This document shows positions 24,201-56,319 of a stretch of DNA of 64,000 nt, piece by piece. Within the stretch, counting starts at the first letter, position 1, and each line of letters opens with the position of its first letter. A model generated the notes under the pieces. That model saw only the letters and a program-made list of their open reading frames with translations, did not search any database and was not told the origin of the DNA. The stretch is from Blastocladiella emersonii ATCC 22665 (lineage: Eukaryota; Fungi; Blastocladiomycota). The DNA is taken from positions 3,658,001 through 3,722,000 of the forward strand of contig JANHCV010000001.1 in NCBI GenBank assembly GCA_025594325.1, read 5' to 3'. The translations under genes and the position numbers were made by a program.

Positions 24201-27200
24201 GCCGACCGCCAGATGATCATGGCCGTGTGCACCCTCGACGTGCACGCGCGAGACATCGTGGCCAAGCTGATCGGCGAGAAGGCCGAGAACGCGCAGTGCT
24301 TCAGTTGGCAGTCGCAGCTGCGCCTGCGGTGGGACGACATCGAGAACGACTGCTTCGCCAACATCTGCGACGCCAAGTTCCGCTACAACTACGAGTACCT
24401 CGGCAACACGCCGCGACTCGTCGTCACCTCGCTCACCGATCGCTGCTACATCACGCTCACGCAGTCGCTCCATCTCATCATGGGCGGCGCGCCCGCGGGC
24501 CCAGCTGGAACGGGCAAGACCGAGACGACCAAGGATCTCGGCAAGGCGCTCGGCATCATGGTCTACGTGTTCAACTGCTCGGACCAGATGGACTACAAGT
24601 CGGTCGGCAACATCTACAAGGGCCTCGCGCAGTCGGGCACCTGGGGCTGCTTCGACGAGTTCAACCGCATCGCCGTCGAGGTGCTGTCCGTGATCGCGAC
24701 CCAGGTCAAGTCGATCCAGGACGCGCTCAAAGCCAAGAAGAAGCGCTTCCTGTTCCAGGGCGAGGAGATCCGCATCCAGTCGACGGTCGGCATCTTCATC
24801 ACCATGAACCCCGGCTACGCTGGTCGTGCCGAGCTGCCCGACAACCTCAAGGCGCTGTTCCGCCCGTGCTCCATGGTCGTGCCCAACCTCGAGCTCATCA
24901 TGGAAATCATGCTCATGGCCGAGGGCTTCGTCGAGGCCGGCATCCTCGCGCGCAAGTTCAACACCATGTACAAGCTCAACCGCGAGCTGCTGTCGAAGCA
25001 GGACCACTACGATTGGGGTCTCCGCGCCATCAAGTCGGTCCTCGTCGTGGCCGGCTCGCTCAAGCGCGCCGAGCCGAACCTGCCCGAGGAGCACGTTCTC
25101 ATGCGCGCGCTCCGCGACTTCAACATCCCCAAGATCGTCACCGACGACGTGCAGGTGTTCATGGGTCTGATCAGCGATCTGTTCCCCAAGATCGAGGTTG
25201 CGCGCAAGCGCAGCGAGGTGTTCGAGTCCGAGATCCGCAAGGCCACGCTCGAGAACGGGTTGCAGGTCGAGGAGAACTTCATCCTCAAGGTCGTGCAGAC
25301 CGAGGAGCTGCTCGTCGTGCGTCACTGCGTGTTCCTGATCGGCAACGCGGCCACGGGCAAGTCGCAGATCTGGAAGACGCTCGCCCGCACGTACAACAAC
25401 ATGGGCCGCAAGTGCACGTTCGCCGACCTCGACCCCAAGGCCGTGACTACGGACGACCTGTTCGGGTTCATCAACCCGTCGACGCGCGAGTGGAAGGACG
25501 GGCTCTTCTCGTCGCTCATGCGCGACTTTGCCAACATGCCCGGCACCGACCCGAAGTGGATCGTCCTCGACGGCGATATCGATCCCGGATGGATTGAGTC
25601 GCTCAACACGGTCATGGACGACAACAAGGTGCTGACGCTCGCGTCCAACGAGCGCATTCCGCTCAAGCCGCACATGCGACTCATCTTCGAGATCGGAGAC
25701 CTCAAGTACGCGACGCCGGCCACGGTCTCGCGCGCCGGTATCCTGTACGTCAACCCGACGGATCTCGGGTGGTCGCCGTACGTGCAGTCGTGGCTCGAGA
25801 AGCGCGAGGACGCGGCCGAGAAGAGCACGCTCATGGTGCTGTTCGAGCGCTACGTCAACCCGTGCCTCGACGTGCTGCGCAGCGGCAAGTTCAAGATGGC
25901 CTCGGTCGAGGACTTCTCCATGGTCCAGACGCTGTGCAGCATCCTCGAGGCCCTGCTCACGCCGCAGAACACGCCCAAGGGGTGCGACAAGGAGTGGTTC
26001 GAGATCTACTTTGTGTTCGCCGCCGTGTGGTCGTTTGGCGGCGCGCTGTTCCTCGACCAGCTCATCGACTACCGCAACGAGTTCTCTAAGTGGTGGAACC
26101 AGGAGTTCAAGACGGTCAAGTTCCCGCCCAACGGGACCGTGTTCGACTACTACGTCGACGCCGAGACCAAGCGGTTCCTGCCGTGGACGGACCGCGTGCC
26201 CAAGTTCGAGTTCGACCCGGACGTGCCGCTGCAGAGCGTGCTCGTGCACACGCCCGAGACGACGCGCGTGCGGTACCTGCTCGACCTGCTCGCCGACAAC
26301 GGCAAGCCCGTGCTCCTCGTCGGCACGGCCGGGTGCGGCAAGACCGTGCTCATGCAGGACAAGCTCCTGAGCTACGGCGAGGACCGCATGATCGTGAACA
26401 TCCCGTTCAACTTCTACACGTCGGCGTGGTCGCTCCAGCCCGTGCTCGAGAAGCCGCTCGAGAAGAAGGCCGGTCGCAACTTTGGCCCGCCGGGCACCAA
26501 GAAGCTCATCTACTTTGTCGACGATCTCAACATGCCCGAGGTCGACAAGTACGGCACCGTATCGCCGCACTCGCTGCTGCGCCAGCACCTCGACTACCGC
26601 CACTGGTACGACCGCCAGAAGCTCACGCTCAAGGAGATCCACAACTGCCAGTACGTGGCGTGCATGAACCCGACGGCCGGCAACTTCACCATCACGTCGC
26701 GCCTGCAGCGGCACTTCTCCGTGTTCTCGGTCAACTTCCCCGGCGTCGACTCGCTCCAGTCCATCTACAACTCGATTCTGCAGGGCCACCTCGGCCACAT
26801 GTCGGTGGCCGTGCAGAAGGCCGGCGAGAAGCTCGTGGCGGCGTCGCTCGCGCTGCACAAGAAGGTGGCCTCGACGTTCCTGCCGACCGCGGTCAAGTTC
26901 CACTACATCTTCAACCTGCGCGACCTGTCGAACATCTTCCAGGGCGTGCTGTTCGCGCAAAAGGACGTGCTCAAGGAGCCCGTCGAGCTCGTGCGCCTGT
27001 GGATCCACGAGACGACGCGCGTGTACGGCGACAAGCTCATCGACGTGGTCGACAACCAGGCGCTGTCGGCCATGCAGCGCGAGTTCGCCAAGAAGAACTT
27101 TGAGGACCAGGACCAGAACGTCATTTTCGCCGAGCCGCTCATCTACACACATTTTGCCGGCGGCATCGGCGAGCCCAAGTACTGCGGCGCCAAGGACTGG

Positions 27201-30200
27201 CCCTCGCTCAAGAAGATTCTCGAGGAGGCGCTCGACCAGTACAACGAGGTGAACGCAGCCATGGACCTCGTGCTGTTCGAGGACGCCATCTTCCACATCT
27301 CGCGCATCAGCCGCATCCTCGAGTCGCCGCGCGGTAACGCGCTGCTCGTCGGTGTCGGTGGTTCGGGCAAGCAGTCGCTCGCGCGTCTCGCGTCGTCCAT
27401 GTCGTCGATGAGCGTGTTCCAGATAACGCTGCGCAAGGGCTACGGCATCGCCGATCTCAAGACGGATCTGTGCGGGTTGTACATCAAGACGGGCCAGAAG
27501 AAGCAGCAGATTATGTTCCTCGTCGCCGACTCGCAGGTGGCCGACGAGAAGTTCCTCGTCCTGATCAACGACCTGCTCGCGTCGGGCAACATCCCGCAGC
27601 TGTTCCCCGACGACGAGGTCGAGAACATCATCAACTCGATGCGCAACGAGGTCAAGGCGCTCGGTCTCGTGGACACGCGCGAGGCGTGCTGGGACCAGTT
27701 TATCAACAATGTCCGCCGCAACCTCAAGGTCGTGCTCTGCTTCTCGCCCGTCGGCAACACGCTGCGCTCGCGGTGCCGCAAGTTCCCGGCCATCGTCAAC
27801 TCGACGCAGATCGACTGGTTCCGCGAGTGGCCGCTCGAGGCGCTCGAGTCGGTGGCCACGCGCTTCATCGACAGCTGCGAGCTCGTGCCCAAGGAGCACA
27901 AGAAGTCGGTGACGCGGTTCATGGCGTTCGCGCACCAGATCGTCAACGACGTGAGCAAGAAGTACCTCATCAACGAGAAGCGGTACAACTACACGACGCC
28001 CAAGAGTTTCCTCGAGCTCATCAACCTGTACAAGGCCATGCTCGAGAAGAAGTCCAACGAGCTCATGCGGTCCATGGAGCGCCTCGAGAACGGCCTGACC
28101 AAGCTCGAGTCGACGGCCGCGCAGGTCGACGACCTCAAGGCCAAGCTGGCCACGCAGGAGGTCGAGCTCAAGGCTAAGAACGAGGAGGCCGAGCGGCTCA
28201 TCGAGCGCGTCGGCATCGACACCGAGAAGGTGAACAAGGAGAAGGGCATCGCCGACGCCGAGGAGCGCAAGGTCGCCGAGTTCACCAAGGAGGTCGAGGA
28301 GAAGCAGCGCCAGTGTCAAGAGGACCTGCGCGCTGCCGAACCTGCGCTCGCTGCCGCCGCCAACGCCCTCAACACGCTCAACAAGGCCAACTTGACCGAG
28401 CTCAAGTCGTTCGGTTCGCCGTCGGCCGAGGTCGTGGACACGGTGGCCGCCGTCATGGTCCTCATGTCGCCCGCCGGCAAGATCGCCAAGGACCGCAGCT
28501 GGAAGGCCGGCAAGAACATGATGGCCAAGGTCGACGCCTTCCTCGAGTCGCTCATCACCTTCAACAAGGAGAAGATTGACCAGTCGAACCTCGACGCGCT
28601 CGAGCCGTACCTCAAAAACGAGAACTTCAACGAGGAGTTCATGAAGTCCAAGTCGATTGCCGCCGCCGGTCTCTGCTCGTGGGTCGTGAACGTTGTCAGT
28701 TACTACCACGTGTACTGTGACGTCGAGCCCAAGCGCAAGGCCCTCGAGACGGCCACGGTCGAGCTCGCGGCCGCCCAGGCCAAGCTGGCCGACATCAAGG
28801 CCAAGATCGCCGAGCTCGACAGCAACCTGGCCACGCTCAAGGCGCAGTTCGAGAAGGCCACGGCCGACAAGCTCCGATGCGAGGAGGAGGCGCGCGCGAC
28901 GCAGGAGACGATCGTGCTCGCCAACCGTCTCGTCGGCGGTCTCGCGTCCGAGAAGGTCCGCTGGAGCGAGGCCGTCGCCCGGTTCCGCGAGCAGCAGAAG
29001 ACGCTCGCCGGTGATGTGCTGCTCGCATCGGCGTTCATCTCGTACGTCGGGTGCTTCAGCAAGCGGTACCGCACCGAGCTCATCGAGGAGAAGTGGATGC
29101 CGTACCTCAAGGACCCGACCACGGGCCTGCCCATGTCCGAGAACCTCGACCCGCTCGACATCCTCACCAACAGCGCCGAGATTGCGCGGTGGAACAACGA
29201 GGGCCTGCCGACGGATCGGGTCTCGCTCGAGAACGCGACCATGGTCACCAACTGCAAGCGCTGGCCGCTCATCATCGACCCGCAGCTGCAAGGCGTCAAG
29301 TGGATCAAGAGCCGGGAGGGCCCGAACCTCAAGATCGTGCGGCTCGGCCAGCGCGGCTACCTCGACATCATCGAGAAGGCCGTCTCGGCCGGCGACGCGT
29401 GCCTCATCGAGGATCTCGGCACGAGCATCGACGCTGTGCTCGACCACATCATCGGTCGCAACACAATCAAGAAGGGCAAGGCCATCAAGATCGGTGACCG
29501 CGAGATCGAGTACGACCCGAACTTCAAGCTCATCCTGCAGACGCGCCTGCCCAACCCGCACTACCCGCCCGAGATCCAGGCGCAAACGACGCTTGTCAAC
29601 TTCACGGTCACCATCTCGGGTCTCGAGGACCAGCTGCTCGCCGACGTCGTCAAGGCCGAGCGGCCCGACCTCGAGGAGACCAAGGCCGAGCTGACCAAGC
29701 AGCAGAACGAGTTCAAGATTAAGCTGACGGAACTCGAAGACGCGCTGCTCTCGCGCCTGTCGTCGGCGCAGGGCAACTTCCTCGGCGACTACGCGCTGGT
29801 CGAGAACCTCGAGACCACGAAGCGCACGGCGACCGAGATCGAGGTCAAGGTCGAGGAGGCCAAGAAGACGGAGAAGCGCATCAACGAGACGCGCGAGCTG
29901 TACCGCCCCGTGGCCGCGCGCTCGTCGCTGCTCTACTTCCTGCTCAACGACCTGTGGCAGATCCACCCCATGTACCAGTACTCGCTCAACGCGTACAAGG
30001 TGGTCTTCCAGCGCGCCATCCAGACGGCCGAGGCGTCCGAGGACATCAAGGAGCGCGTCATGGCCCTGATCGACAACATCACGCACCGGACGTACCTGTA
30101 CACGACGCGTGGTCTGTTCGAGCGCGACAAGCTCATCTTCGCGGCGCAGATGACGTTCCAGATCCTGCTCGGCCAGGGCGACATTGACCCGCAGGAGCTC

Positions 30201-32336
30201 GACTTCTTGCTCCGCGCGCCCAAGGTGTTCGGCGTCAACTCGCCCGCCGAGTGGCTCGCCACGTCGTCGTGGCAGACGATCAAGGCGCTGTCGAACCTCG
30301 AGCCGTTTCGCCTGCTGCCCAACGACATCGAGGGCAGTAGCAAGCGCTGGAAAAAGTACTGCGAGTCCGAGGCGCCCGAGAACGAGAACCTGCCCGCCGA
30401 GTGGAAGAGCAAGACGCCGATGCAGAAGCTGTGCATCCTGCGCGCGCTGCGGCCCGACCGCATGTCGTACGCGGTCCGCGGGTTCATCGGGCTCAAGATG
30501 GGCCCCAAGTACATCGACTCGTCGCGCATCCCGCTCACGCGCACGTACGAGGAGACGTCGAACATCACACCCGTCTTCTTCATCTTGTCGCCCGGTGTGG
30601 ACCCCGTCAAGGAAGTCGAGGCGGTCGGCCGCACGCAGGGCGTGGCCGAGGATCTCGGCAACTTCCACAACGTGTCGCTCGGCCAGGGCCAGGAGGTGAT
30701 CGCCGAGCAGAAGCTCGACATTGCGCACCACAACGGCGGCTGGGTCATGCTCCAGAACATCCACCTGGTCGCCAAGTGGCTGCCGCTGCTCGACAAGAAG
30801 CTCGAGGCGCTCATGCAGGACGCGCACCCGTCGTTCCGCGTGTTCCTCTCGGCCGAGCCGGCGGGCGACCCGGCGTACCACATCATCCCGACGTCGATTC
30901 TGCAGGCCTCGATCAAGATCACCAACGAGCCGCCGACGGGCATGAACGCCAACCTGCACCGCGCGCTCGACAACTTCAACCAGGAGACGCTCGAGCGGTG
31001 CTCCAAGGAGGCCGAGTTCAAGGGCATCCTGTTCGCGCTGTGCTACTTCCACGCTGTGGTCCTCGAGCGGCGCAAGTTCGGCACGCAGGGGTGGAACCGC
31101 TCGTACCCGTTCAGCACCGGCGACCTGACCATTTCCGTCGACGTGCTGTACAACTACCTCGAGGCGTGGTCCAAGGTGCCGTGGACCGACCTGCGGTACA
31201 TGTTCGGCGAGATCATGTACGGCGGCCACATCTCGGACGACTGGGACCGGCGCCTGTGCACGTCGTACCTCGAGGTGTACATTCGCGAGGACCTGTTCGA
31301 GGGCGGGTTCGAGCTCGCGCCCGGGTTCGCCGCGCCGCCCAGTCTCGACTACAAGGAGTACCACCGGTACATCGACGAGGTGCTGCCGCCCGAGTCGCCG
31401 TACCTGTACGGCCTGCACCCGAACGCGGAAATCGGCGTCCTGACCAAGATGGCCGAGAAGCTGTTCAAGACGCTGCTCGAGATGCAGCCGCAGGACGCGG
31501 CGGCGGGCATGGCGGTCAGCAAGGAGGAGAAGGTCAAGGCGACGGTCGACGAGATCATGGGCTCACTGCCCGACCCGTTCAACGTGCCCGAGCTCATGTC
31601 GCGCGTCGAGGAGCGGACGCCGTTCATCTCGGTGGCGCTGCAGGAGTGTGACCGCATGTCGATCCTCACCACCGAGATCCGCCGCTCGCTCAAGGAGCTC
31701 GACCTCGGTCTCAAGGGTGACCTGACCATCACCGAGGCCATGGAGGCGCTCATGAACGCCATCTTCTTCGGCTCGATTCCGGCGTCGTGGGAGAAGCTCG
31801 CGTACCCGTCGCTCAACCAGTTTGCGGCGTGGTACGCCGACCTGCTGCAGCGCATCAAGGAGCTCGAGCAGTGGGTCGCCGAGTTCCAGCTGCCCGCGGT
31901 GGTGTGGCTGCCCGGGCTGTTCAACCCGCAGTCGTTCCTCACGGCCATCATGCAGACGACGGCGCGCAAGAACGAGTGGCCGCTCGACCGCATGGTGCTC
32001 ACGGTCGAGGTGCTCAAGAAGCCCAAGGAGGAGTGCACGGCGCCGCCCCGCGAGGGTGCCTACATCCACGGGCTGTTCATGGAGGGCGCGCGGTGGGACA
32101 GCAACACGGGCTGCATCGCCGACTCGTTCCTCAAGGAGCTCACGCCCACGATGCCGGTCATCTTCGTCAAGGCGATCCCCGTCGACAAGCGCGAGACCAA
32201 GGGCATCTACGAGTGCCCCGTGTTCCGCACGCGCCAGCGCGGGCCGACCTACGTCTGGACCTTCAACCTCAAGACCAAGGAGGCGCCGGCCAAGTGGGCG
32301 CTGTGCGGCGTCGCCCTGCTGCTGTCGGCCGAGTAG
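18268..32336 (+). CDS. Axonemal outer-arm dynein heavy chain, beta type (DNAH9/11/17, ODA4-like); exons 18268-18419, 18494-18887, 18964-19297, 19362-20046, 20108-32336 (~4,597 aa)
   Basis: Four P-loops (GPAGTGKT, GNAATGKS, GTAGCGKT, GVGGSGKQ); CFDEFNR, FITMNPGYAGR, DHYDWGLRAIKSVL; stalk and MTBD; C-terminal YECPVFRTRQRG...W; N-terminal DPRLEFF...LKVKSDKW typical of the beta outer-arm class. Four GTACGC introns keep the frame. Confidence 0.96.
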
Positions 32337-32725: not shown

Positions 32726-35700
32726 ATGTCGGAAGGGCGCGAGCTCGCCCAGGGCGGCGGTGCCAACCGGTGGAAGGTGGGTCCGCTCTCGCTGCTCGAG
32801 GGCGATAAGAACCCATGGCTGATGGTCGCGCCCGTCGCCGCGCACGCATCGCGGATCTAGTATCAATCGTTCCAAGACCGCATCAAGCATGTCCGCATCG
32901 ACGTGACGCAGAGCGCCATCGCGCTCCGCCACGAGGAGGAAGACCTCGAGTCCTTCTTCGTCGGCGCCCTGCAGCAGTGGCAGGAGCTCAACTGCACGGC
33001 CGAGTTCTCGGCCTTTGTGCGCGACATCAACCGCTACGCGCAGTCGCTCGCCCTCGTCCTCTACCACAAGCAGGAGATTGTCGAGGCCATCATTCGCCAC
33101 CTCGGCGTGATGTCGACCAACGCTTACGAGCCGATCCTCAAGTACGCGTTTTCTTGGTTGTTGTGCTCTCGATGCCGTACTCACCCTATGTGCGCTTTGT
33201 GCGTGACTAGCCTCACGACCATGCTCGCCAAGGACCTGCGCCAGGAGATCTTCGAGTCCCTCGGCCCCATCGTGCGCGCCATCCTGCCGCTCCTCCGCGT
33301 CCGTGACGCCAGCGTGATCGAGGTACGTTGCGGCGTCAACCCAAGCGCTCTCTGAGCTGCGCTAACGCGTTTGTTTCCGCCTCGTCTAGCACGCGTTCCA
33401 ATGCATCGCGTACCTGCTGCGGTACCTGCAGGGCAACGTGCTGCGCGAGATGCCCGCCGTCTTCGACATGCTCTCGCCCCTGCTCGGCCGCGGCGCCGAG
33501 TACAAACCGTTCATCCGCCAGTTCGCCGCCGAGTCCGTGTCGTACATGATCCGCCAGACCCAAAAGGACAAGGCCCGCGTCCGCTCCGTTGTCACCCACA
33601 TCATGGAGACGGCCGACGCCGAGGGCAACCGCACCGGCGCCACCTACGCCGAGTCGCTCGGCCACATGTTCGCCGAGACCATGATCCACGTCAACTACAC
33701 GACGCACTCGTGCACCTCGGTCCTCCTCCAGAACCTGCTCGACTGCGCCATCGAGGCGCCCAGCGAGCGCCGCGACTTCGTCATGGCCGCCGCGTTCCAG
33801 CGCCTGATGCAGCGGACCAACAAGGATACGAACGCCACCGTGCTCAAGCTCATGGCTGCAGCCTGGCCGCGCGACGTGGACCGCCTCAGCCGGTACTACC
33901 TGCCGTGCATCGCCCTGCGCAACGGCGACCGCATCCCGAGCTGGTCGGCCATGCTCGCGACCTTCTCTTCGGTTGCCGTGCCGCATGAGACCGTTTCGAT
34001 GGCGACCATGGAGCTCTTTGCCCAGCTGCTGCTCCACGCCTCGTACGAGGACGTGATCAAGAACGTCTCGACGCTCGAGCGCACCATCAACCACCCCGGC
34101 CTGACCGTCGACGTCCAGCTCCACTTCCACCGCTGCCTCCTGCGCGGCAAGTTCGAGAGCTACAACTCGCTCGTGCTCCCGCTCACCGTCAAGTTCCTGA
34201 CCGCCCGGTGGGCCTCGCTCGACCTGTCGCTCGTCGTCGGCTTCCTCGCCGAGGTGCTCGGCAGCACGCCGCTGCTGCACTCGGCCGCCTCGTCGTGCGT
34301 GTCCAAGGACAACAAGCTCATCTTCGACCCAGCGTTCCCGACGCTGAGCATCATCGCCGACTACAAGCCGGCCTCGGGCGACCGCCGCCTCGTCGTCGCC
34401 GCCGTCTCCGCGGCGCGCAAGCTCGCCCTGCCCGCCAAGAAGCTGCAGGCCGCGCTCGTCACGCTGCTCGGCAAGACCGCCGACGACACGTTCCTCTTCA
34501 GCCACACGCTGCAGACGCTGCTCGCCCTGCGCCTCATGAACGCCGCGGCGGTCGCGCACGTCGAAGCCGTGGAGCTGCGTGAGTGCCCGTACCTCGCCGC
34601 GTCCGTGGCCGAGTTCATCACCCTGACCGACTCGCTCACGCCCGAGAAGCGCACCGTGTGGTCGGCCAAGCTCGTGCCGTTCGTGTCCTCGATGCAACAC
34701 TCGTTGCGCGAGCCTGTCATCCGCGCGCTCGCCTTCCTGCAGCCCAACGAGCCCCTCCTCGACACGTGCTTCTCCATCGAGTCGACGCCGTGCACCATGG
34801 ACACGCACCGCAGCAAGGCCATGCACCTCAAGAACCTCGGCCTCGCCATCTCCAAGAACACGTCGGCGCACGTCGCCGAGGTCGTCTCCCGGCTTGCGCT
34901 TGCGCTGTACGCCGTCAACTACGCGCCGCTCTGGCCCCCGGTCACCGGGCTCATCGCCAAGGCCATTGCTGCCTTCCCCGACGCCTTCTGGGCGCAGTAC
35001 ACGGCGCTGCTCCCCAAGTTCCAGAACCGCGACTCGTTCCCCGAGGTCGTGACCAAGTTTGCGCCGCTCGAGACGCTCGAGCCGACCGCGGGCGAGATCA
35101 TGCTCCAGGAGTTTGCCGAGTCAGTGTTCACGATCCAGGCCGAGCGCATTGACTACTGGAACATCTACATCCAGGCGGTCAAGGCGCTCTCGGGCACCCA
35201 GCTCGCCGAGGCCAAGACCAAGTTCTTCGTGCCCATGTTCCTGCAGTTCGTGCAGTACGAGTACCGCCACTACCACGACGACCTGCCCGCGCTCGACGAG
35301 GAGTGCGTGACCGACCTGCCGTTCGAGCACGGCCACGCGCTGTCGCTGACGCACGTCATCGTGACCAAGAAGCTCACCACGTTCCTCGAGCTGCTGTCGC
35401 ACTACAAGCCGTCGCAGGTGCATAAGTCGGCCATCCTCTACGACTTGTACCTCGCCCTGCTGCTGCGCGGTGACGCCGTGCTGCAGAAGGCGTCGCTCAT
35501 GTGCATCAACACGTACGGCCGCGACTGGTACAAGCCGTACCACGCGCTCATGCTCCGCCTCGTCGAGGACGGCTCGTTCCGCGAGACGATGCTGTCCATC
35601 AAGATCGACGGCCACGAGACGCCCACGTTCCGCCCCGAGCACCGCGGCTCCATCTTCCAGATCCTCACGCGCCTGCTCTACGGCCGCATGATGTCGCGCA

Positions 35701-38700
35701 AAAGCCACATGGCCGCGCGCCGCGGCAACGTGCTCAGCCTCATGGCCGCGGCCACCGACGACGAGATCCGGTTCCTGTTCGGGCTCATGGTCCCGTGCTC
35801 GCTGCCCGCGGGCACCGTCGACCTCGACATCCTCGACCGTGTCGACGTGCGCAAGACAGCCGGTTTCCTCAACCTCATGGACGACACGATCAAGCAGATC
35901 AACCGCCGCCTCGTGTGCGTGCTCGGCCCCATGTTCGACCTCCTCACTTCGATCGCCTGCGCGACCCACCGCACCATCGTCGAGCGCGAGGCCTCGGCCA
36001 TGGACGTCGACGGCGCCGGGTCGGAGCAGAAGCCGGAGGCCGACCACGACCACGACGACGCCGACCGCGACGACGAGGACGATGCCGCCGACGCTGCCGA
36101 GCACGGCGGTCTGTCGCTCAAGCGCCTGTACAAGATGCGCACGCTGTCGATCCGCCGCCTCATCACGCTATTCGACCTCGACATCAAGTACGACTACTCG
36201 GTGTACGCCGGGTCCGTGTTCGAGCACCTCGTGCGCCCGCGCCTCGCCAACCTCGTCCACGAGAACAAGACGTCCGTGTCGCCCGGCATGCAGTTCCTCT
36301 CGTCGTGGGCCGTCAACCACTTCGAGGTGTTCCAGCCGATCGCCACCGAGGTGCTCCCGGCCATGGTCGCGTGTCTCCCCGGCTTCGAGCCCGTGCGGTC
36401 CCGCGTTCTCGACACGCTCTTCTCGGTGCTCGACAAGGAGGCGCCGCTCCTGGTCGACATCTCGTCGCAGCTGTTCGACGTGAGCGCCAAGCTGGTCCAC
36501 CCCAAGTCGGTCGGCGCCATGTCGCGCCTCATCAAGCTGTGCTCGGAGATGGCGCCGCTCATCCGCCCCGAGGAGGCGCCGATGCTCGTCACGGTGCTGC
36601 TTCCCGTCGTTACCTCGTCCAAGTCGTCGCCTGAGACCAAGGACAGTATCCTGGTCATCCTGCAGTCGTGCATCCCGCACCTGCCCGTCGAGGACGTGCG
36701 CACCGTGCTGCTCACGGTCAGTCGCCTGTTCCCCGTTCTGGTCGTCCGCGAGTCCCGCCAGCAGCTCGTCAAGCTCGTGCAGACAGTCGCCGACGCGCTG
36801 GACCTGTCGTCGGTCGGCCACGTCGTGCGGGGCCTCAACCAGTACTCGACGCGCCGCATCGACGACCTCGACTACGACGTGGTCCTCGCCACGTTCATGA
36901 ACCTCGGCAAGCGGTGCGGCGAGCTCGCGTACCTCGAGTGGGTCCCGATCCTGTACAACCTGTTCCACCTCATCAAGGACGAGGACATGAGTGCCCGCGG
37001 CAACGCGTCGCACGTCATGTGCATGTTCGTGCAGCAGGCCAAGGACAAGGTCGAGCTGCGCCCGCTCGTCCAGCACGTCGTGTACCCGGCGTTCAAGGCG
37101 TCGCTCAAGGGCTCGCTCCCCGAGATGGTCCGCATCGAGTGGATCAAGGTCCTCATCGAGTGCGTCAAGTCGCTCGACATGGAGCCGTTCAGCGACATGA
37201 CCCGCCTCCTGCCGCAGGACGCCTCGGACGAGTCGAGCTTCTTCGAAAACGTATACCACATCCAGCTGCACCGCCGCCAGCGCGCGCTCGTGCGCCTGCG
37301 CGACCACGTTCCGCACCTGCGCCCGGCCACGCTCAACTACGTCCTGCTCCCCATCGTCTCGCGCGCCCTCGACAGCAAGGACCCCAACGTCGCCACCGAG
37401 GCCATCGCGACCATCACGGCCATCACGCGCAACCTGCCCTGGGCCTCGTACTACCTCGCGCTGCGCAACTTCTTCAGCCAGCTCCGCGCCCAGCCCGAGA
37501 AGCGCCGCGAGAAGGTCCTGCTCCGCGCCGTCGTCGCCGTGCTCGACGGGTTCCACTTCGAGATCGCCGACGCGCCCACGACCAACCCGGCCGAGATGGA
37601 GGTTGCCGCCGCCGACGGCGAGGCCGCGGCCCCCGCTGCCGCCGCTGCCGCTGCTGAGGCTGAGGCCGACGAGGAGGAGGACGAGGACACGACCGCGACC
37701 GAGGCCCAGGTCGAGGAAGAGGACGCCGAGGACCGCGCCGCGGCCTCTACCGAGCTCTCGCTCGCGCGGTTCAAGTGGAAGGTGCTGCGCACCGTGACGC
37801 TCAAGATCATCCCCGAGATGCTCAAGTACCTGACGGCGCGTAAGGCGACCGACGAGGACCACATCAGCGTCCGCGTGCCGATCGCGCTCGGTGTCACGTA
37901 CCTCATCACCTGGCTGCCCGAGGCCAACAAGAACCTCGAGATCCCGTCGCTGCTCACCAAGCTGTCGCAGCTGATGCGCTCGCGCGCGCAGCCCACGCGC
38001 AACGTGACGCGCGACACGCTCGCCAAGATCATGACCACGCTCGGCGCCAAGTACCTGTTCTTCATGATCAAGGAGCTCAAGGGCGCGCTGCTCCGCGGCT
38101 ACCAGCTGCACGTGCTCGGATTCACGGTGCACACGATCCTCAGCACCGTGCCGCTCACCATGGGCGCGCTCGAGGCGTGCGCCGACGACCTGTGCGAGAT
38201 CCTCAGCAACGACGTGTTCGGCGACGTCGGCGACGAGAAGGACGCCGAGGCCTACATCAAGGCCATGAAGGAGCTCAAGGGGTGCATGTCGTTCGACACG
38301 ATCGAGATCGTGTGCCGCACCGCGTCGCTGCGCGTCATCTCCAAGCTGCTCGTCCAGGTCAAGCGCGTCCTCGTCAACACGCGCGAGGCCTCGCTGCTCG
38401 ACAAGGCGCACCGCGTCCTCAAGCGCATGACGCACAGCGTCATCGCCAACCAGGGCCTCGAGATCGAGCAGCTCATGAAGCTCGTCAACTCGCTCATCGT
38501 CGACACGTTCGCCATCGCCAACAGCAACGACGTGGACGAGGACGCCATCGCCACGGCGCAGACGCAGACGCAGCGCGTCCAGGCGGCGACGACGCAGTGG
38601 AAGGCCAACGCACACTACTTTGTCGAGTTCGGCCTCCACCTGCTGCAGACGATCCTGCGCAGCCCGCGCCTCGACGTCAAGAACCCGATCCACACGCAGA

Positions 38701-40586
38701 TGCTCAACGCCATGGTCGACGCCGTGGGCCAGTGCTTCTCGGCCAAGCACAACAACACGTTTGTGCTCGCCACGTACGCCATGCAGTACCTGGCCAAGCT
38801 GCCGCTGTCCGAGCTCCGCGGCACGCTCCCCGCCGTCATGTCGGACGTTTTCGCGATGCTCTCGAACCTGCAGAACGCGCGGTCCGACATTGGCCACGCG
38901 TGCCTCAAGCTGATCCTCGGTATCATGCACAGCTGCGACTACATCCCGTTCACGCAGGCGCAGGTCAAGCTCCTGATCCGCCTGCTGCGGCCCGAGATCC
39001 ACGACCACGACAACCACACGATCACGTACTCGCTCATCAAGGGGATCCTGTCGCGCCGCGTCGTCGTCAACGAGGTGTACGAGCTGATCCTCGACATTGC
39101 GCACATCATGGTCACGTCGCAGACGCAGGCGGTGCAGGACCTGTGCCGGTCCGTGTACCTGCAGTTCCTGCTCAACTACCCGCAGGGCAAGAAGCGCATG
39201 GAGAACCACATCACCTGGATGGTCAAGAACCTCGGCTACGAGTACGAGCAGGGCCGCACCAGCGTGCTCGAGCTCATGCACTCGTTCATCCGCAAGCTGC
39301 CCGCCGACCTGACGGCCGAGTACGGCGAGATCATGTTCATGGGCCTCGTCTCGTGCCTCACCGACGACGCGCCCAAGTGCCAGGCCATGGCCGCCAAGGT
39401 CATCCAGGTCCTGCTCGCGCGCATGACGCAGCTCGCCCAGGTCAACAAGATGGTCGCCAGCTGGTACAAGAACGCCGCGACAAAGCTCGTCGCCGTGCAG
39501 CTCCACGGCCTGCTCATCCTCGCCGGCCGCGGCGTGCCCGAGCACCTGCCGCTCCTCGCCGACCTATTCCGCGAGTGCGCCGAGCGCGCGGCCGCCGAGC
39601 TCGAGGCGTCGGGCGAGGAGGAGACGCTCGAGCTCGTCGATGGCGACGAGAGCCACCTCGACAGCAACACCGAGTGGAAGCTCCTGTACCTGTCGATCCT
39701 GACGCTCACCAAGCACATCACGGCGCACCCGGAGCAGTCCGACATCGACCTCGTCGCCACGCTGTCGCCGCACCTGTCGCACCCGCACACGTGGGTCCGC
39801 CTCGCTAGCTCGCGCTGCATCGGCCTCCACTTTGCATCGTCGCCGACACTCGACCTCGGCGTGGCGCGCAACCTCGCGCGCGAGTTCACGCGCCAGCTCG
39901 CGTCCGAGTTTCTCAACGACGAGCTCGCGACGCAGGTCGTCAAGAACCTGTTCTTCATCGCCAAGCAGATCCACGCGCAGGGGTCGAGCGCTGCGGCGGA
40001 GGACGACGACGAGGCCGCCGCCGCGGAGTCGGACAACGACGCGGAGGCCGGCGCTGCCCCCAAGGACAAGAAGCGCGGTACCGCGTCGGCGCCGCTGTAC
40101 TCGTTCGTGCAGCACCTCAGCTTCCTCGCGCGCAAGGACCAGGCGCGCAACACGGGCACGCTGTTCCGCAAGAGCATCTTCCAGGTGTTTGCGGCGGTCG
40201 CGAACGCGTTCGACGTGGACACGGTGCAGCCGCTGCTCCACCCGATCATGGCGCCGCTGTTCCGCACGATCCAGGACACGTCGGTCAAGGGCGAGGCGTG
40301 GGACGAGCTGCGCACCTTCTGCCAGCAGATCATGGAGCTGCTGCAGGAGAAGCTCGGCAACGCGGCGTTCACTGCGGCGTACGCCGACGTCCGCCAGCGC
40401 GCCGAGTCCAAGCGCCAGTCGCGCAAGCAGGACCGCGCCGAGATGGCCGTTGTCAACCCGCAGCAGTACGCCAAGCGGAAGATTGCGCGCAACGAGCTCA
40501 AGAAGAAGCAGAAGAAGCGGCGCGCCGAGGACGAGATGGCCTCGCGTGTCAGGACATCGGTCAAGCGCGCCAAGACCACGCACTAA
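32726..40586 (+). CDS. UTP20: U3 snoRNP / SSU processome component UTP20 (HEAT repeats); exons 32726-32776, 32861-33141, 33211-33322, 33390-40586 (~2,546 aa)
   Basis: N-terminal YQSFQDRIKHVRID, LVLYHKQEIVEAI, LAKDL; central FFENVYHIQLHRRQRAL and LLRGYQLHVLGFTVH; YLQFLLNYPQGKKR; basic C-terminus AKRKIARNELKK; size fits. Confidence 0.93.
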
Positions 40587-52134: not shown

Positions 52135-53266
52135 ATGCCAGCGTGGATTCTTGTGAGTGCGCGCGGTAACTGCGAGGGGGGTCCCGCGACGAGACTAACG
52201 ACAGCCCGCCTGCCCCGTAGGTGTCCAACGTCAGCCGGCACGTCCAAAAGGACAAGCTGCGGAAGCTGTTTGCGCATCTCGGCGACATCCGGCAACTGGT
52301 CCTGAAGCCGTACGGACTCTGAAAACTGCCTTTTTCGCAAGAGACCGCTCACACCCTTCTTACCTGTAGCGCCGACGACGGCTCCCCCACGACCGAAGCC
52401 GCAATCGAGTTCGCCAAGTCGGACGACGCGCGCGTGGCCGTGCTCCTCGACGGGACCCCGTTCCTCGACACGGCGCTGGCCGTGGCCGCGTACCAGGACG
52501 AGGACCAGCTGCAGCGCATTGCGCGCACGCTGCGCATCGACCGCGTCCCGCTCGACGCTAACGTCGACACGCTCAAGGCGCTGTTCGCCGAGGCCGCTGT
52601 CGACGGGATCCGCCGCATGCGGATGGGGAACGGGACCGATCCCGACACGGCCCTCGGATACGCGTTCGTCGAGTTCGGGAATCCCGAGCAGAAGGAGGCG
52701 GCCGTCGCGCGGATGGAGGGCGCGGCGCTGGGCGAGCAGCAGCTCATGTACGTGCCGTTTGCGCGGCTGTGAGAGGAAGGGCGCTGGACTGACTTCTCCT
52801 CGGCGTGTGTAGCATCTCCAACTCGCGCATCGCCATCTCCAAGGGCAAATCCGGCGGCCGCCCGCCGCTCGTCCTCGCCATGGCCGCCGCGCTGTCGTCG
52901 TCGGCCCCGCCCACGGCGCCCGGGAGCGTCGACGGGGGTTCCGGCACGCCCATGCGCGGCGACTCACGGTCTCGCGGTCCCGGTGCCGCCGGGGAAACCC
53001 GGTCGCGCCGGTACGACGACATGGACGTCGACCGGTACCGCGACCGCGACCGCGACGACGACCGGTACGGCGGCGGCTCCAGTCAGCGGCGGAGTACCCG
53101 GCGGCGGTCCCGGTCCGACTCGCGCGACCGCGACCGTGACCGTGACCGTGACCGTGATCGCGACAGGGGACGGTACGACGATCACCGCCGTGGTGGCGGG
53201 TACCGCAACAGCGCGCGGAACCATAGCCGCGAGCGGTCGCCCGACGCCAAGCGGGCAAGGCGCTGA
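52135..53266 (+). CDS. SR-related splicing factor, SREK1/SRSF11-like (two RRMs plus RS/RD tail); exons 52135-52152, 52221-52309, 52370-52747, 52813-53266 (~312 aa)
   Basis: RRM1 ILVSNVS...LRKLFAHLGDI...IEFAK; RRM2 RTLRIDRV...GYAFVEF...ISNSRIAISK; RS/RD-rich C-terminus; GT-AG introns keep the frame. Confidence 0.8.
53123..53164 (+). repeat. Hexanucleotide CG(C/T)GAC repeat encoding an RD dipeptide run in the SR protein
   Basis: cgcgac cgcgac cgtgac cgtgac cgtgac cgtgat cgcgac, read directly. Confidence 0.8.
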
Positions 53267-53339
53267 ACTGACGGTGCTGGTGGAGGCGGACGCTGCGTGA
53301 TACATTTCATTTGACTCTACCTGCTGCTTTGCTACTCCC

Positions 53340-53400
53340 TTGTTCAGACAACGATAACGACAACGACGGCCTCTTTGTTCAGACAAACGACAACAACGGC
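53340..53400. repeat. Short imperfect direct duplication (TTGTTCAGACAA...CGAC(A)AC.ACGGC) in the shared 3' region of two convergent genes
   Basis: ttgttcagacaacgataacgacaacgacggc followed by ctctttgttcagacaaacgacaacaacggc. Confidence 0.7.
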
Positions 53401-53430
53401 ATGAACACACGACAGTCACCGACCGACTAC

Positions 53431-54810
53431 TCACTCGCGCTGCTGCTGCACCTGCGCCTGCGCCTGCTGCTGCTGCTGGCCCGCCGACGGCGAGCCCGCG
53501 CGGCCACCCGACGACGCGGGCGCCGACGCGGGCGGGTGCGCGGCCGCCTCAGTCCCGCCGCCGCCCTCGCCGCCCGTGTGGCCCTCGTCAGTCCCACCAC
53601 GGCGCGCGCCGCGACCACGGCGACCGCGCCCGCGACGGCCGCGCCCAGCACCGCGCGTGCCCGCCTCACCGCCGCCGGCCGCCTGCTGCTGGTGCTCCGT
53701 GTCCTCGGCCCCGCCGGGCCCGCCGTGCTCCGTGTCCGTGTGCTGCTTGTTGTCGTGCGGCGACTGGGCGCGGCTGGGACCCGCGCCCGCGTTGCCGCCG
53801 CCGCGACCGGTGTACGAGGCGCGGCGCTTGGGCGGGTGCTCGAGGTACATCTTGTAGTCGTAGTCGAGGGCGCGGTAGATGGCCTCGTTGAGCGTCTTGG
53901 GCAGCCCGCGCGGTTCGCCGCCGGTCCCGGCGCCGCCCTCGCCGACGGGCCCCTCCACGGCAGCGTGTGTCTGCGCGTCGAGCGTCTCGAGGAAGTACTT
54001 GACGAGCGTCGGCTCGTCGGGGCGCGGCTTGAGCGCGACGAGCAGCGCGCGGAAGTGGCCGACGTGCTGGATCATGCGGCCGTGGCCGCCGTTGCCGAGG
54101 CGCAGCCGCGACAGGCGCGCCAGGGCCGCCGCGTGGTCGGCGGCCGCCGGGCGCGCGATCTCGGCCAGGAACTTGGGCCGGTACAGCAGCGTCCACAGGT
54201 CCGAGGCGGCCATGGGCGGCGGCGCGGACGCGGCCGTGGTGGCGGTGGAAGTGGATGGCGGTGAGACCGCGGCGGCGCCCTTGAGCTTACCGGGCGACGG
54301 CTGGCGCGTCGGCGACGGGGTGCGCGCCGAGGGCGACCCGCCACTGCCGCCGCGGGCCTGCTGGGCGGGCGCGGGCGAGGCCGGGAGCGGGATCCCGTGC
54401 GGCGTGGGGGCCGTGGCGGCGGCGACGGCCTTGTCGTCGTCGGGCCCGAGCAGCATCAGCGCGTCGAACCACGGCCACATGGACGAGTCGACGTGGCTGC
54501 GGAAGACGAGCGGCCACTGCCACATGGGCACGCCGTACGCGAGCATCGTGTGCTCGAACGCCTCGAGCCACGGCCGGCCCCAGTCGCGGTGCGGGTGGAA
54601 CGTCGGGAACGACAGCGTGCGCGCGTCCACGAGCACCGCCTGCGGGTGCGGGTGCGTGGCCACGCCGGGAATCAACTTGGCGGCCGTCGCGTGCGTCGCG
54701 GGCAGCGGCGCAATGTTGGACGTGTCGGCGGGCAGGCCAATGGCCTCGGTCGTCGGCGGCGGCGCCACGGCGGCCGCGCGGATCGTCGGGTTCGAGGTGA
54801 CGACGGGCAT
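53431..54810 (-). CDS. Stand-alone Ty3/gypsy-type Gag capsid-like protein with RGG-rich tail (~459 aa); no pol or LTR
   Basis: CA-NTD-like PTFHPHRDWGRPWLEAFE...WPLVFRSHVDSSMWPWF; CA-CTD/MHR-like ARLSRLRLG...HVGHFRALL...DEPTLVKYFLETL...PKTLNEAIYRALDYD; GRGRRGRGRRGRGARRGG tail. ATG at 54810 inferred; the ORF is open from 54972. Confidence 0.68.
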   Translation of the reverse strand: MPVVTSNPTIRAAAVAPPPTTEAIGLPADTSNIAPLPATHATAAKLIPGVATHPHPQAVLVDARTLSFPTFHPHRDWGRPWLEAFEHTMLAYGVPMWQWPLVFRSHVDSSMWPWFDALMLLGPDDDKAVAAATAPTPHGIPLPASPAPAQQARGGSGGSPSARTPSPTRQPSPGKLKGAAAVSPPSTSTATTAASAPPPMAASDLWTLLYRPKFLAEIARPAAADHAAALARLSRLRLGNGGHGRMIQHVGHFRALLVALKPRPDEPTLVKYFLETLDAQTHAAVEGPVGEGGAGTGGEPRGLPKTLNEAIYRALDYDYKMYLEHPPKRRASYTGRGGGNAGAGPSRAQSPHDNKQHTDTEHGGPGGAEDTEHQQQAAGGGEAGTRGAGRGRRGRGRRGRGARRGGTDEGHTGGEGGGGTEAAAHPPASAPASSGGRAGSPSAGQQQQQAQAQVQQQRE

Positions 54811-55268
54811 CTGCGGCTTCTTGGAGGCAGTCGGGGTGGTGGTGATGGCGAACGTGATCCGTCGTCTGGCTCCAAAGTCGGCAGCGGGAGGGAGCGGGGA
54901 GCGCGGACCGCTTGCGACGGCGCGCCGCTGGTTCCACAGGCATCCCCGCTCGCCCGCCTCGCTCGCTCCCACGCATCAGCGGCAGCGCATGCCACCGAGA
55001 CAAGGCGGGCGGCACGGGCACGGCAGGAGCGACCGACCCGCGGGTCCAGCCCCTCCTCAGCCCGAACGCGTCGCGTCGCGGCTGCGCAACGAACGCGTCG
55101 GCCTCGCCCACGTGCGCTGGCTCCCTGACCACTTCGCCGCTTGCTCTCGACTTCCTCCCTCCCCTCGCGACCCTCCCCCGCATTGCCACGTAGCTATCCG
55201 CGAGTCACAACTCGCTGCAACCGCCCCGGGCACCCCGCACCTGCCCGTCCTCGCCTTCTTGCCCAATT

Positions 55269-56319
55269 ATGCCGCGCAACAAGCGCACCGCCTCGCGCGA
55301 CGCGGCCGCCGCCAAGCCGCTGCTGCAGCAGGACGACGCCCCGCCCGCCTACACCAACGCCGGCAGTCCCGCTGGCGCCGCCGCCGCCAACTATGCCACC
55401 TTCCCGGGCTCGTCGTCGTCATCCCCGACGCCGGCGCCGGCGGCGCAGACCATCGTGACGCACGTCGTGGCGCCGGCTGACGAGCGCGTCCACCACGTCA
55501 TCGTCGTCCACACGGGCGCCGCGGTCCCCGAGGAGCGCGCGCGCCAGCTGTACGCCAAGAGCCCGTGCTCGGACTGCACGCGCGCCGCGGTGTGCCCGCT
55601 CGTCACGTTCGTCCTCGTCGTGCTCGGCCTCGCCACCACCATGCTCGTCTACCCGCGCCTGCTCGCCGTCAACGTGCACGACGTCGGCCTCGACTTTGCC
55701 AAGGTCCCGCCCATCAAGTTCGGCCTCGCGCCGCCCTCGGTCACCCTGCACCTCCTGAGCAACGTGTCCATCTGGAACCCGCTGCTCACCGACTTGCACA
55801 ACGTCTCGCTCAACGTCGTCGTACGTCAACCTTCTCCCGACGCGACCCTACCGTGACGAAACGCTCACACTCTAGCGCCCGCGCGCGTAGGCGAAATACC
55901 CCCACTTTGACCCGCCCGTCGTCATTGGCCGGTCCACGCTCGACCAGCTGCTCGAGCTGCCGTCGCGCCAGCAGGCCTCGGCGCTCATCCCCTTTGACGT
56001 GAAGCTGCCCGACGCCTCGCTCCCGTCTGCCTCGTCCGGCGACGACGAGCACCAGATCAGCCTGCTCTCGCGCATCACCGGCCTCGTCTCTTCTACCGCC
56101 GAGCCACCGCGCGCCGCGGCGCCCGGCCTCCTCGACGTGGTCCTCGCCCTCGTCGACGACTGCAAGTCGCGCAACGCCATCGCCCTCGACCTCGAGATCC
56201 GCACCTCGGCCGCGACCTGGTGGTGGAAGTTTGGCGGGTCCGTCAACGTCGCGCGCAACGTGCTCGTCGCGTGTCACGCCGCCAACGACACGGGCACGCC
56301 GGTGTACGTCGTCGCGTAA
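55269..56319 (+). CDS. Single-pass membrane protein with LEA_2-like extracytoplasmic domain; exons 55269-55820, 55891-56319 (~326 aa)
   Basis: PPAY motif, Cys-rich juxtamembrane segment, TM LVTFVLVVLGLATTMLVYPR, then beta-strands VNVHDV, VSIWNP...SLNVVV, LDLEIRT, VNVARNVLVAC; GTACGT...TAG intron in frame. Confidence 0.75.

Follow-up and report, generated by a model that had tools for sequence, protein, structure and literature searches.

P0001, a protein from the fungus Blastocladiella emersonii ATCC 22665, is the product of a genuine, single-copy and lineage-restricted Blastocladiella gene. Judged by its sequence, residues 226-325 may well descend, in a very diverged form, from the CA C-terminal domain (CTD) of a Ty3/gypsy Gag, a reading that we place just short of an even bet. 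A first-pass annotation had proposed a domesticated capsid gene. This identity is possible; our results lend no support to a CA N-terminal domain, to the assembly of capsids or to the packaging of RNA. The match to Gag provides a concrete hypothesis of descent for an otherwise uncharacterised orphan gene.

Gene structure and genomic context

B. emersonii is a water mould-like fungus that belongs to an early-diverging, flagellated and zoosporic lineage. The window analysed here is a stretch of 64,000 nucleotides of contig JANHCV010000001.1, on which P0001 is annotated as a single-exon gene (Table 1). Long open frames are frequent in this genome of 70% GC, and the intact reading frame of P0001 is therefore weak evidence by itself, but its strong codon-position periodicity is not. 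The GC3 of P0001 is uniform along its length and amounts to 0.946, compared with 0.93-0.965 in the neighbouring genes, which agrees with the host-like codon usage claimed earlier. Such host-like GC3 speaks for a long residence of the gene as well as for its coding nature. The periodicity continues through the Pro/Ser/Ala-rich insert, where GC3 is still high, and the insert is thus coding; an intron at this place was ruled out on the same grounds. A longer reading frame is unlikely to start from a GTG at 54972, given that upstream of the ATG GC3 drops to 0.78-0.86. The antisense open reading frames, for example 53879-55480 on the forward strand, are artefacts of the 70% GC.

Table 1. Positions within the window of the P0001 gene, the parts of its product and the adjoining intergenic regions
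Feature	Position	Strand	Basis
Complete P0001 CDS, 459 codons and TGA	53431..54810	-	annotation; GC3 in frame
Residues 1-62, Pro/Ala/Thr-rich N-terminus, predicted disordered	54625..54810	-	composition; model without secondary structure here
Residues 63-122, Trp-rich helical region 1, 6 Trp, three predicted helices	54445..54624	-	model, composition
Residues 123-204, Pro/Ser/Ala-rich disordered insert, coding	54199..54444	-	GC3 0.90-0.98
Residues 205-326, helical region 2, five or six predicted helices	53833..54198	-	models
Residues 226-325, segment aligning to Ty3/gypsy Gag CA C-terminal domain	53836..54135	-	hhalign, decoys, PDB anchor
Residues 327-385, Gly-rich mixed-charge spacer	53656..53832	-	composition
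Residues 386-405, RG-rich basic box, 10 Arg and 8 Gly in 20 residues	53596..53655	-	composition
Residues 406-459, Gly/Ala/Ser tail with a Gln-rich run at its end	53434..53595	-	composition
Convergent intergenic/3' UTR region, 164 bp, common to P0001 and the RRM/RS gene	53267..53430		
Divergent upstream region, 458 bp, from the P0001 ATG to the ATG of the 326-aa gene	54811..55268		

The neighbours of P0001 are DNA ligase I, a gene of 326 amino acids that lies upstream and has no Pfam hit, an RRM protein and Iso_dh. The RRM/RS gene is convergent with P0001 and the two stop codons are 165 bp apart, just as had been described for the tight placement between host genes and the distance to the stop of an SR-protein gene. 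The motif TGTCTGAACAA occurs twice on the P0001 sense strand within this convergent region (53340-53350 and 53375-53385). No tRNA or Rfam match was found near the gene. The claimed absence of pol and LTRs holds, with no pol open reading frame in the window and no LTR-type direct repeats within 6 kb on either side of P0001. The copy number is also as expected, since the window contains one copy and the protein collections searched contain no paralogue. Within this scope P0001 is a solo, single-copy gene with neither pol nor LTR in a host gene context, a combination used to recognise co-opted gag genes.

The protein is basic (pI 9.75), contains no cysteine and is largely disordered apart from two short alpha-helical regions. 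All sequence strings quoted in the first-pass annotation are present in it: the Trp-rich string occupies residues 69-118 and is followed by a Pro/Ser/Ala stretch of 82-85 amino acids, and the strings from LWTLLYRPKFL to TLNEAIYRALDYD are located at residues 205-319. The insert is placed where the Gag families that we fetched differ in length. Because the protein is free of cysteine it has no CCHC knuckle, as had been stated. The knuckle of the fetched Gags lies about 43 residues past their CTD, and in P0001 the distance from the end of the CTD-like segment to the RG box is about 60 residues. This part had been described as an RGG-rich basic tail at the nucleocapsid position. The basic box is indeed there, but with seven RG and only one RGG (404-406) it is RG-rich and not a classical RGG repeat. 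It qualifies as a tri-RG motif in a disordered region, and a box of 20 residues with seven RG fits the 'tri-RG' definition that Thandapani et al. reportedly gave in 2013.

An exhaustive phmmer search of 1.84 billion representative proteins found only P0001 itself. A word-index search of a set of 5.8 billion clusters with the whole protein was dominated by low-complexity words, with only P0001 among the matches listed, and the same kind of search with the C-domain alone gave no match. Scans of metagenome and IMG/VR contigs detected no relatives, and phmmer searches of the PDB sequences with the whole protein and with each region returned nothing at E<=10. The precomputed Pfam record for P0001 lists no family, and there was no match in NCBIfam or PHROGs, neither of which is designed for eukaryotic Gag. 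Orthologues had been named as a check on the proposed domestication, and none was present in the protein collections, the metagenome contigs or the viral contigs. By these searches P0001 is an orphan protein, and with no orthologues found there is no evidence of long-term selection.

One way to read this isolation is that P0001 is a decaying solo-gag retrotransposon relic whose frame has stayed open by chance and which does nothing for the host. The missing orthologues and paralogues, the highly diverged sequence and the loss of the knuckle would all suit a relic. We consider it extremely unlikely, however, given an intact reading frame of 1.38 kb whose GC3 is uniform and equal to that of its housekeeping neighbours, and given the compact intergenic setting between conserved genes, where no LTR, pol or repeat remnants are seen.

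Similarity to the Gag CA C-terminal domain

For the comparison with Gag we built profiles from fetched Ty3/gypsy LTR elements, the matching family being one whose members carry PF03732/PF19259; the alignments served solely as scoring profiles. In hhalign, residues 226-325 of P0001 align with the CA-CTD columns of the Gag profile and are colinear over 75-88 columns. Against the profiles of this PF03732-bearing family the P values for this segment range from 1.6e-4 to 1.5e-3, with probabilities of 16-57%. The first profile gave scores of 29-35 (P 7e-4 to 1.5e-3), and after nine more Gag loci had been added the scores were 35-38 (P 1.6e-4 to 3e-4, probability 39-57%). A second hhalign implementation returned E-values of 4.6e-4 and 6.8e-4, with probabilities of 33% and 27%. 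The same region of the profile matches the CA-CTD of PEG10 (7LGA) at an E-value of 1.6e-11. The gaps in the alignment of P0001 and Gag sit in Gly-rich loops between four predicted helices.

None of the decoys reached the score of the real protein. This applies to full shuffles (0/400 and 0/250), to shuffles within local blocks of 12 residues (0/240), to windows of real B. emersonii proteins (0/75) and to six-frame windows of GC-rich open reading frames (0/330), the best decoy score being 26.3. Bona fide Gags of other lineages (L050 and L085) score no better than P0001 against the same profile, or worse. The L050 family is also without a Pfam gag hit, and for this reason the silence of Pfam on P0001 is not disqualifying.

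The signal is fragile, and other comparisons lowered it or gave none. A merged profile of 27 Gag sequences scored P0001 at only about 22 (P 0.009-0.016), with 3.8 bits in HMMER, and a jackknife traced the signal mainly to one subfamily, the sister subfamily alone giving a P value of 0.3. A second Gag family (L050-type) and the single, divergent Gags L003, L018, L034, L084 and L085 did not match P0001. P0001 retains the G, F, L and A of the profile, but the near-invariant Q and E are aligned to L238 and H252, so that both of the MHR-like polar residues (Q...E) of the first CTD helices are lacking and the MHR call is weak. The earlier match to Retrotrans_gag/MHR and the CA C-terminal domain can therefore be divided: residues 226-325 match the profile weakly, with P values of 2e-4 to 1e-3, and the Q/E signature of the MHR is absent. 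The profile match gives weak but non-trivial backing to an origin of this segment in a Gag CA C-terminal domain, at a level below proof of homology. It counts against descent from Gag that the P value is modest and that P0001 had been picked in the first place for its resemblance to Gag.

A different explanation is that P0001 is a lineage-specific orphan, either fast-evolving or de novo, that is RG-rich and disordered, and that its likeness to Gag is a chance match of amphipathic helices rich in Leu, Ala and Arg. Such an orphan would be expected to be alone in the exhaustive and word-index searches and to leave Pfam, NCBIfam and the PDB silent. It would also account for a P value of only about 0.01 with the merged profile, for the lack of any contribution from one subfamily and from the N-terminal region, and for the loss of the polar signature residues of Gag. 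At P values of about 1e-3 to 1e-4, a genome-wide scan of some 10,000 proteins would give several chance hits. It is less easy to see why chance would keep every one of about 820 decoys, whether matched in overall composition, matched in local composition or drawn from real proteins, at least 9 score units away, or why the score increased when the profile was enriched. The alignment furthermore runs colinearly with the four predicted helices and is placed on the CA-CTD instead of a random part of the profile, and the overall domain order of P0001 mimics that of Gag. We regard a chance match as a serious candidate whose probability lies noticeably under one half.

N-terminal region and capsid formation

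The first-pass annotation had extended the likeness to Gag to residues ~69-119, which were said to match the Ty3/gypsy CA N-terminal pattern. Compared by eye, the N-terminal motif of P0001 runs colinear to the opening stretch of CA in the fetched Gags. Across all Gag profiles, residues 58-125 score only 9-14 (P 0.2-0.7), which is not above chance. Removal of the insert in silico did not rescue the match: joining residues 58-125 to the C-domain gained less than one score unit and the global score dropped.

Because no homologues were found, P0001 was modelled from its single sequence with AlphaFold2 and no MSA. The models are all-alpha and of low confidence (pLDDT 41.9 and 46.6). Three Foldseek searches with them against the PDB and BFVD found nothing at E<=0.001, and their best matches included no capsid; the generic helical bundles that they listed were dismissed as meaningless.

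In the full proposal of the first-pass annotation, P0001 is an Arc/PEG10-like Gag that was domesticated independently, has both capsid lobes, and would form virus-like particles and package or store zoospore mRNA or restrict retroelements. This idea can draw on the same CTD profile evidence, on the colinear N-terminal motif, on an 85-aa insert at a position of length variation, on a basic RG box at the NC position, and on host context and codon usage. Capsid lattices need the N-terminal lobe, however, and it is statistically unsupported here. The disordered insert of 82-85 residues would fall inside the putative NTD, the low-confidence models (pLDDT 42-47) yielded no capsid fold match, and orthologues are missing among 1.84 billion representative proteins. 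We find this reading improbable, and it is likewise doubtful, to the same degree, that P0001 forms capsids. A scenario in which a blastoclad independently co-opted a Ty3/gypsy Gag, swapped the knuckle for an RG box, took up a long disordered loop in the N-terminal lobe and still makes capsid-like particles, with RNA packaged or stored in them in zoospores for instance, is very unlikely.

Relation to known systems

We suggest, as the most likely mode of action, that P0001 would associate with itself and bind RNA, with homo-oligomerisation mediated by the helical core and RNA bound by the RG box. If the protein is derived from Gag, the knuckle-type nucleocapsid would have been replaced by the RG box or have evolved into it, and P0001 would be a solo gag-like host gene that keeps the CTD dimerisation module. 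It would then be closer to a SCAN or RTL8-type remnant than to a proven Arc-like capsid former. The SCAN domain and RTL8-type remnants are CA-CTD-only derivatives, and the CTD of SCAN, which in vertebrates is fused to zinc-finger transcription factors, is a dimerisation module and not a capsid. A Gag-derived P0001 would share with them that the CTD-like part alone is detectable, but in it an RG box and disordered regions take the place of the zinc fingers.

P0001 is likened to the CA-CTD of Ty3/gypsy (Metaviridae) Gag, represented by PF03732 Retrotrans_gag and PF19259 Ty3_capsid, by its colinear alignment and its four predicted helices, with the alignment gaps in loops. From its composition, P0001 also appears similar in carrying a basic segment of RNA-binding type downstream of the CTD-like part. 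It differs in that the match is borderline and that Q/E, a detectable N-terminal lobe and the CCHC knuckle are lacking; unlike the elements, its locus has no protease, RT, integrase or LTR, and Pfam models are silent on it. A precedent for the basic segment is found in Ty1 Gag, which has no knuckle and binds nucleic acid with a basic, disordered and cysteine-free C-terminal chaperone region. Ty1 belongs to the copia type and has its own pol, and is likened to P0001 by architecture, not by sequence. In many RNP-granule proteins, Gly-rich and Gln-rich disorder flanks RG/RGG motifs. The RG box of P0001 is flanked in the same manner as in RG/RGG-motif RNA-binding proteins, although P0001 lacks canonical RNA-binding folds such as RRM, KH or LSm and its box holds a single true RGG.

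In animals the co-option of gag genes is well documented. P0001 resembles such genes (Arc, dArc1, PEG10/RTL, PNMA and the fungal Crtg12-14) in being solo and single copy, without pol or LTR, among host genes and with host codon usage. Those genes were defined, in contrast, by clear Gag homology together with orthologues that are syntenic in several families and with signs of both selection and expression, whereas no orthologue of P0001 was found in the collections searched. The fungal genes Crtg12-14 were described by Wang and Han 2021 (PMC8321522), and all three are from Dikarya and derived from Ty1/copia or Bel-Pao. That systematic survey reported no fungal co-opted gag from Ty3/gypsy and none from zoosporic fungi (PMC8321522). 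In the very unlikely scenario of co-option described above, P0001 would be the first co-opted gag of fungi to come from Ty3/gypsy, and also the first from a zoosporic lineage. Once verified, a case in Blastocladiella would carry the co-option of capsid genes to the early-diverging, flagellated fungi, and would supply a knuckle-free Gag variant with an RG box for study.

Pfam can miss bona fide Gag families, and remote derivatives of Gag are therefore probably under-counted. When IMG/VR was scanned for further members of the matching Gag family, the starting element alone came back. A scan of the same collection for RT motifs yielded mostly contigs of 7-8 kb that resemble plant pararetrovirus genomes.

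Candidate gene and protein

The candidate lies in the Blastocladiella emersonii ATCC 22665 assembly GCA_025594325.1 (contig JANHCV010000001.1; genome paper PMC9730499), and the first-pass annotation was correct in placing it in a zoosporic fungus. ORF length is no evidence for coding here, because a 70% GC genome has long open frames on every strand, but codon periodicity is. GC in the three codon positions of the candidate frame is 0.75/0.62/0.95, and the GC3 of 0.95 matches that of neighbouring housekeeping genes (0.93-0.965), in agreement with the host-like codon usage originally described. GC3 remains at 0.90-1.00 over the ORF body, including the Pro/Ser/Ala stretch; only over the final ~75 codons does it drop to ~0.8-0.9. 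Since GC3 equals that of the neighbours and persists across the ORF body, the candidate ORF is real coding sequence, and the high GC3 within the Pro/Ser/Ala insert rules out that this is an intron. That the gene is a functionless relic seems to us very improbable. Long antisense or off-frame ORFs are found in many places and reach 3686 aa opposite the dynein gene. We rejected them as artefacts of the ~70% GC, as their codon-position GC pattern is unlike that of real genes.

Features of the candidate gene, its protein P0001 and the surrounding region
Feature	Position	Strand	Description
Candidate CDS	window 53431-54810	-	Uninterrupted 459-codon ORF, TGA stop; annotated as a single-exon gene in the assembly
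P0001, N-terminus	residues 1-62		Pro/Ala/Thr-rich, disordered
P0001, Trp-rich region	residues 63-122		6 Trp, three predicted helices
P0001, insert	residues 123-204		Pro/Ser/Ala-rich, disordered
P0001, helical region	residues 205-326		Five or six predicted helices
P0001, spacer	residues 327-385		Gly-rich
P0001, RG box	residues 386-405		10 Arg and 8 Gly in 20 residues; 7 RG dipeptides, one RGG
P0001, tail	residues 406-459		Gly/Ala/Ser, Gln-rich run at end
Convergent neighbour	window 52135-53266	+	RRM protein; long Arg/Asp/Ser-rich tail with (RD)n run
Divergent neighbour	window 55269-56319	+	326 aa, hydrophobic stretch; no Pfam family recorded
Very long ORF	window 20199-32336	+	GC3-rich, 4045 aa
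Very long ORF	window 33438-40586	+	GC3-rich, 2382 aa
Antisense/off-frame ORFs	window 53879-55480	+	Up to 533 aa
TGTCTGAACAA copy	window 53340-53350	-	Exact
TGTCTGAACAA copy	window 53375-53385	-	Exact

All protein strings quoted in the first-pass annotation are present at their places. P0001 contains no cysteine (pI 9.75), which confirms that there is no CCHC knuckle. The tail described as RGG-rich does hold a basic, RG-rich box, but this is not a classical RGG repeat.

No paralogue or orthologue of P0001 and no source element was detected in our searches of protein, metagenome, IMG/VR, Pfam, NCBIfam, PHROG and PDB data; unannotated fungal genomes were outside their scope at the DNA level. The orthologues that had been proposed as a check were thus not found: among 1.84 billion representative proteins, phmmer with residues 58-350 recovered P0001 itself only, and nothing further came from word-index searches in which the query was the complete protein or residues 200-350. 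No relative was found among JGI metagenome contigs or in IMG/VR, no family is on record in Pfam, NCBIfam and PHROG gave no match, and no PDB chain matched at E<=10 with the full-length protein or one of its two helical regions as query. Because P0001 is without homologues, AlphaFold2 was run on the single sequence. Both models are all-alpha and unreliable, with pLDDT of 41.9 (residues 58-350) and 46.6 (residues 198-340), and Foldseek searches with them against PDB (twice) and BFVD gave generic helical bundles only, with nothing at E<=0.001; such models speak neither for nor against the capsid fold proposed in the first-pass annotation.

Comparison with retrotransposon Gag proteins

To obtain real Gags, IMG/VR was scanned with a degenerate DNA pattern of the conserved reverse-transcriptase motif. 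The matches include LTR retrotransposons of metagenome origin that have ORFs for gag (CCHC), protease, RT and integrase, and Gags from two of these (loci L024 and L050) seeded a protein search that gave two families. Most of the motif loci are contigs of 7-8 kb in which the motif lies near 5.5 kb, an arrangement like that of plant pararetroviruses (Caulimoviridae). Family 1 Gags carry PF03732 (Retrotrans_gag) and PF19259 (Ty3_capsid), and the family was enlarged by nine Gag loci from metagenome contigs. Its profile matches the PEG10 capsid C-terminal domain (7LGA, E 1.6e-11), which identifies its capsid (CA) C-terminal columns, and also Ty3 Gag (6R22) and, through the knuckle, retroviral nucleocapsids. 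Family 2 (L050:1209-2459; P0002, P0004-P0008) derives from a genuine LTR retrotransposon, whose downstream pol shows motifs of protease, RT and integrase. It has a zinc-knuckle Pfam match alone, with no Retrotrans_gag on record, and is related to family 1 only by profile-profile comparison (94-96%); real Gags can therefore be Pfam-invisible. A third LTR element (L085:171-4448) has Gag and Pol fused in one ORF; neither Gag profile finds its capsid part, and only the knuckle matches. The Gag alignments served as scoring profiles only.

With hhalign, P0001 residues 226-325 fall exactly on the CA C-terminal columns of family 1, and the gaps of 3 and 13 residues sit in Gly-rich loops between predicted helices.

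hhalign comparison of P0001 with Gag profiles
Profile	Score	P	E	Probability
First, 10 sequences	29-35	7e-4 to 1.5e-3		16-26%
Enlarged, 18 sequences	35-38	1.6e-4 to 3e-4		39-50%
Enlarged, capsid columns only	32-34	1.1e-4 to 2.9e-4		40-57%
Alignment A4, separate run	30-36		4.6e-4 and 6.8e-4	33% and 27%

The C-terminal part of the proposed Gag match is thus recovered at borderline significance (P 1.1e-4 to 1.5e-3), but a merged 27-sequence profile (both families and three divergent Gags, with uncertain alignment quality) scores only ~22 (P 0.009-0.016), and the near-invariant Q and E of the MHR-like pair are replaced by L238 and H252, the residues in common being Gly, Phe, Leu and Ala. Against the family 1 HMM, the HMMER score is no more than 3.8 bits (single-target E 1.4e-3). 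In a jackknife one subfamily supplies most of the signal (P 6e-4 to 9e-4), against P 0.3 for its sister subfamily by itself; three outliers align at the same place with P 0.013-0.048. As positive controls, distant real Gags used as single sequences score at the same level as P0001 or worse (L050 reaches 34% against the first profile).

We consider it close to an even chance that residues 226-325 are a strongly diverged CA C-terminal domain of a Ty3/gypsy Gag, judging from sequence comparison. Somewhat below even, and a serious possibility, is that P0001 is an unrelated orphan which resembles Gag by chance: the P values are modest, and at 1e-3 to 1e-4 a whole-proteome scan is expected to give a few chance matches. 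The test is also not fully independent, because the protein was picked for looking like Gag. Against chance, no decoy reached the real score among full shuffles (0/400 and 0/250), shuffles within 12-residue blocks (0/240), windows of real B. emersonii proteins (0/75) or six-frame GC-rich ORF windows (0/330); the best decoy scored 26.3, and the empirical nulls behave as the P values predict.

The match to the CA N-terminal domain was not recovered. Against all Gag profiles, residues 58-125 score no better than noise. Joined in silico to the C-terminal domain, with the insert removed and colinear on the capsid start, they gain <1 score unit, and in global mode the join costs ~10 units. By eye, the position of the 82-85-residue insert agrees with variable-length gaps within the fetched Gag families, a small point in favour of the first-pass annotation. 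A full Arc/PEG10-like Gag that has both lobes, assembles capsids and packages RNA is unlikely: capsid lattices need the N-terminal lobe, which is unsupported here and would have a long disordered insert within it.

Possible function and precedents

Whatever its origin, a helical core with an RG box and Gly-/Gln-rich disorder would suit a self-associating RNA-binding protein, and established knowledge of RG motifs points to such a role for P0001. A systematic survey of co-opted gag genes describes 14 events; the three fungal ones are all from Dikaryan groups and derive from Ty1/copia or Bel-Pao (PMC8321522). The survey asked for orthologues in several families together with synteny and evidence of selection and expression (PMC8321522), none of which the Blastocladiella candidate can offer. 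If verified, the candidate would be the first fungal co-opted gag of Ty3/gypsy origin, and also the first from a zoosporic lineage.

Genomic surroundings

The candidate is convergent with an RRM/RS-protein gene, the 'SR protein' of the first-pass annotation, and the reported 165 bp between the stop codons is borne out. Its divergent partner, 458 bp upstream, encodes the 326-aa protein without a Pfam hit, whose hydrophobic stretch is probably membrane-spanning. Other genes nearby encode DNA ligase I, an isocitrate/isopropylmalate-type dehydrogenase, an LYR protein and a dynein heavy chain, and one of the two very long GC3-rich ORFs falls within the gene whose annotation includes a dynein heavy chain domain (DHC_N2). 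The reported lack of LTR and pol sequences holds, with no LTR-like direct repeat within +/-6 kb of the candidate and no pol-like ORF in the window, where we also found no tRNA, Rfam family or second copy of the candidate. The 164-bp spacer of the convergent pair is AT-richer, and the two TGTCTGAACAA copies in it lie 46 and 81 nt past the candidate stop codon, each within a ~25-nt imperfect direct repeat. TGTCTGAACAA matches nowhere else in the 64 kb of the window, where 0.01 matches would be expected, and the pair may be an element of the 3' UTR or of termination.
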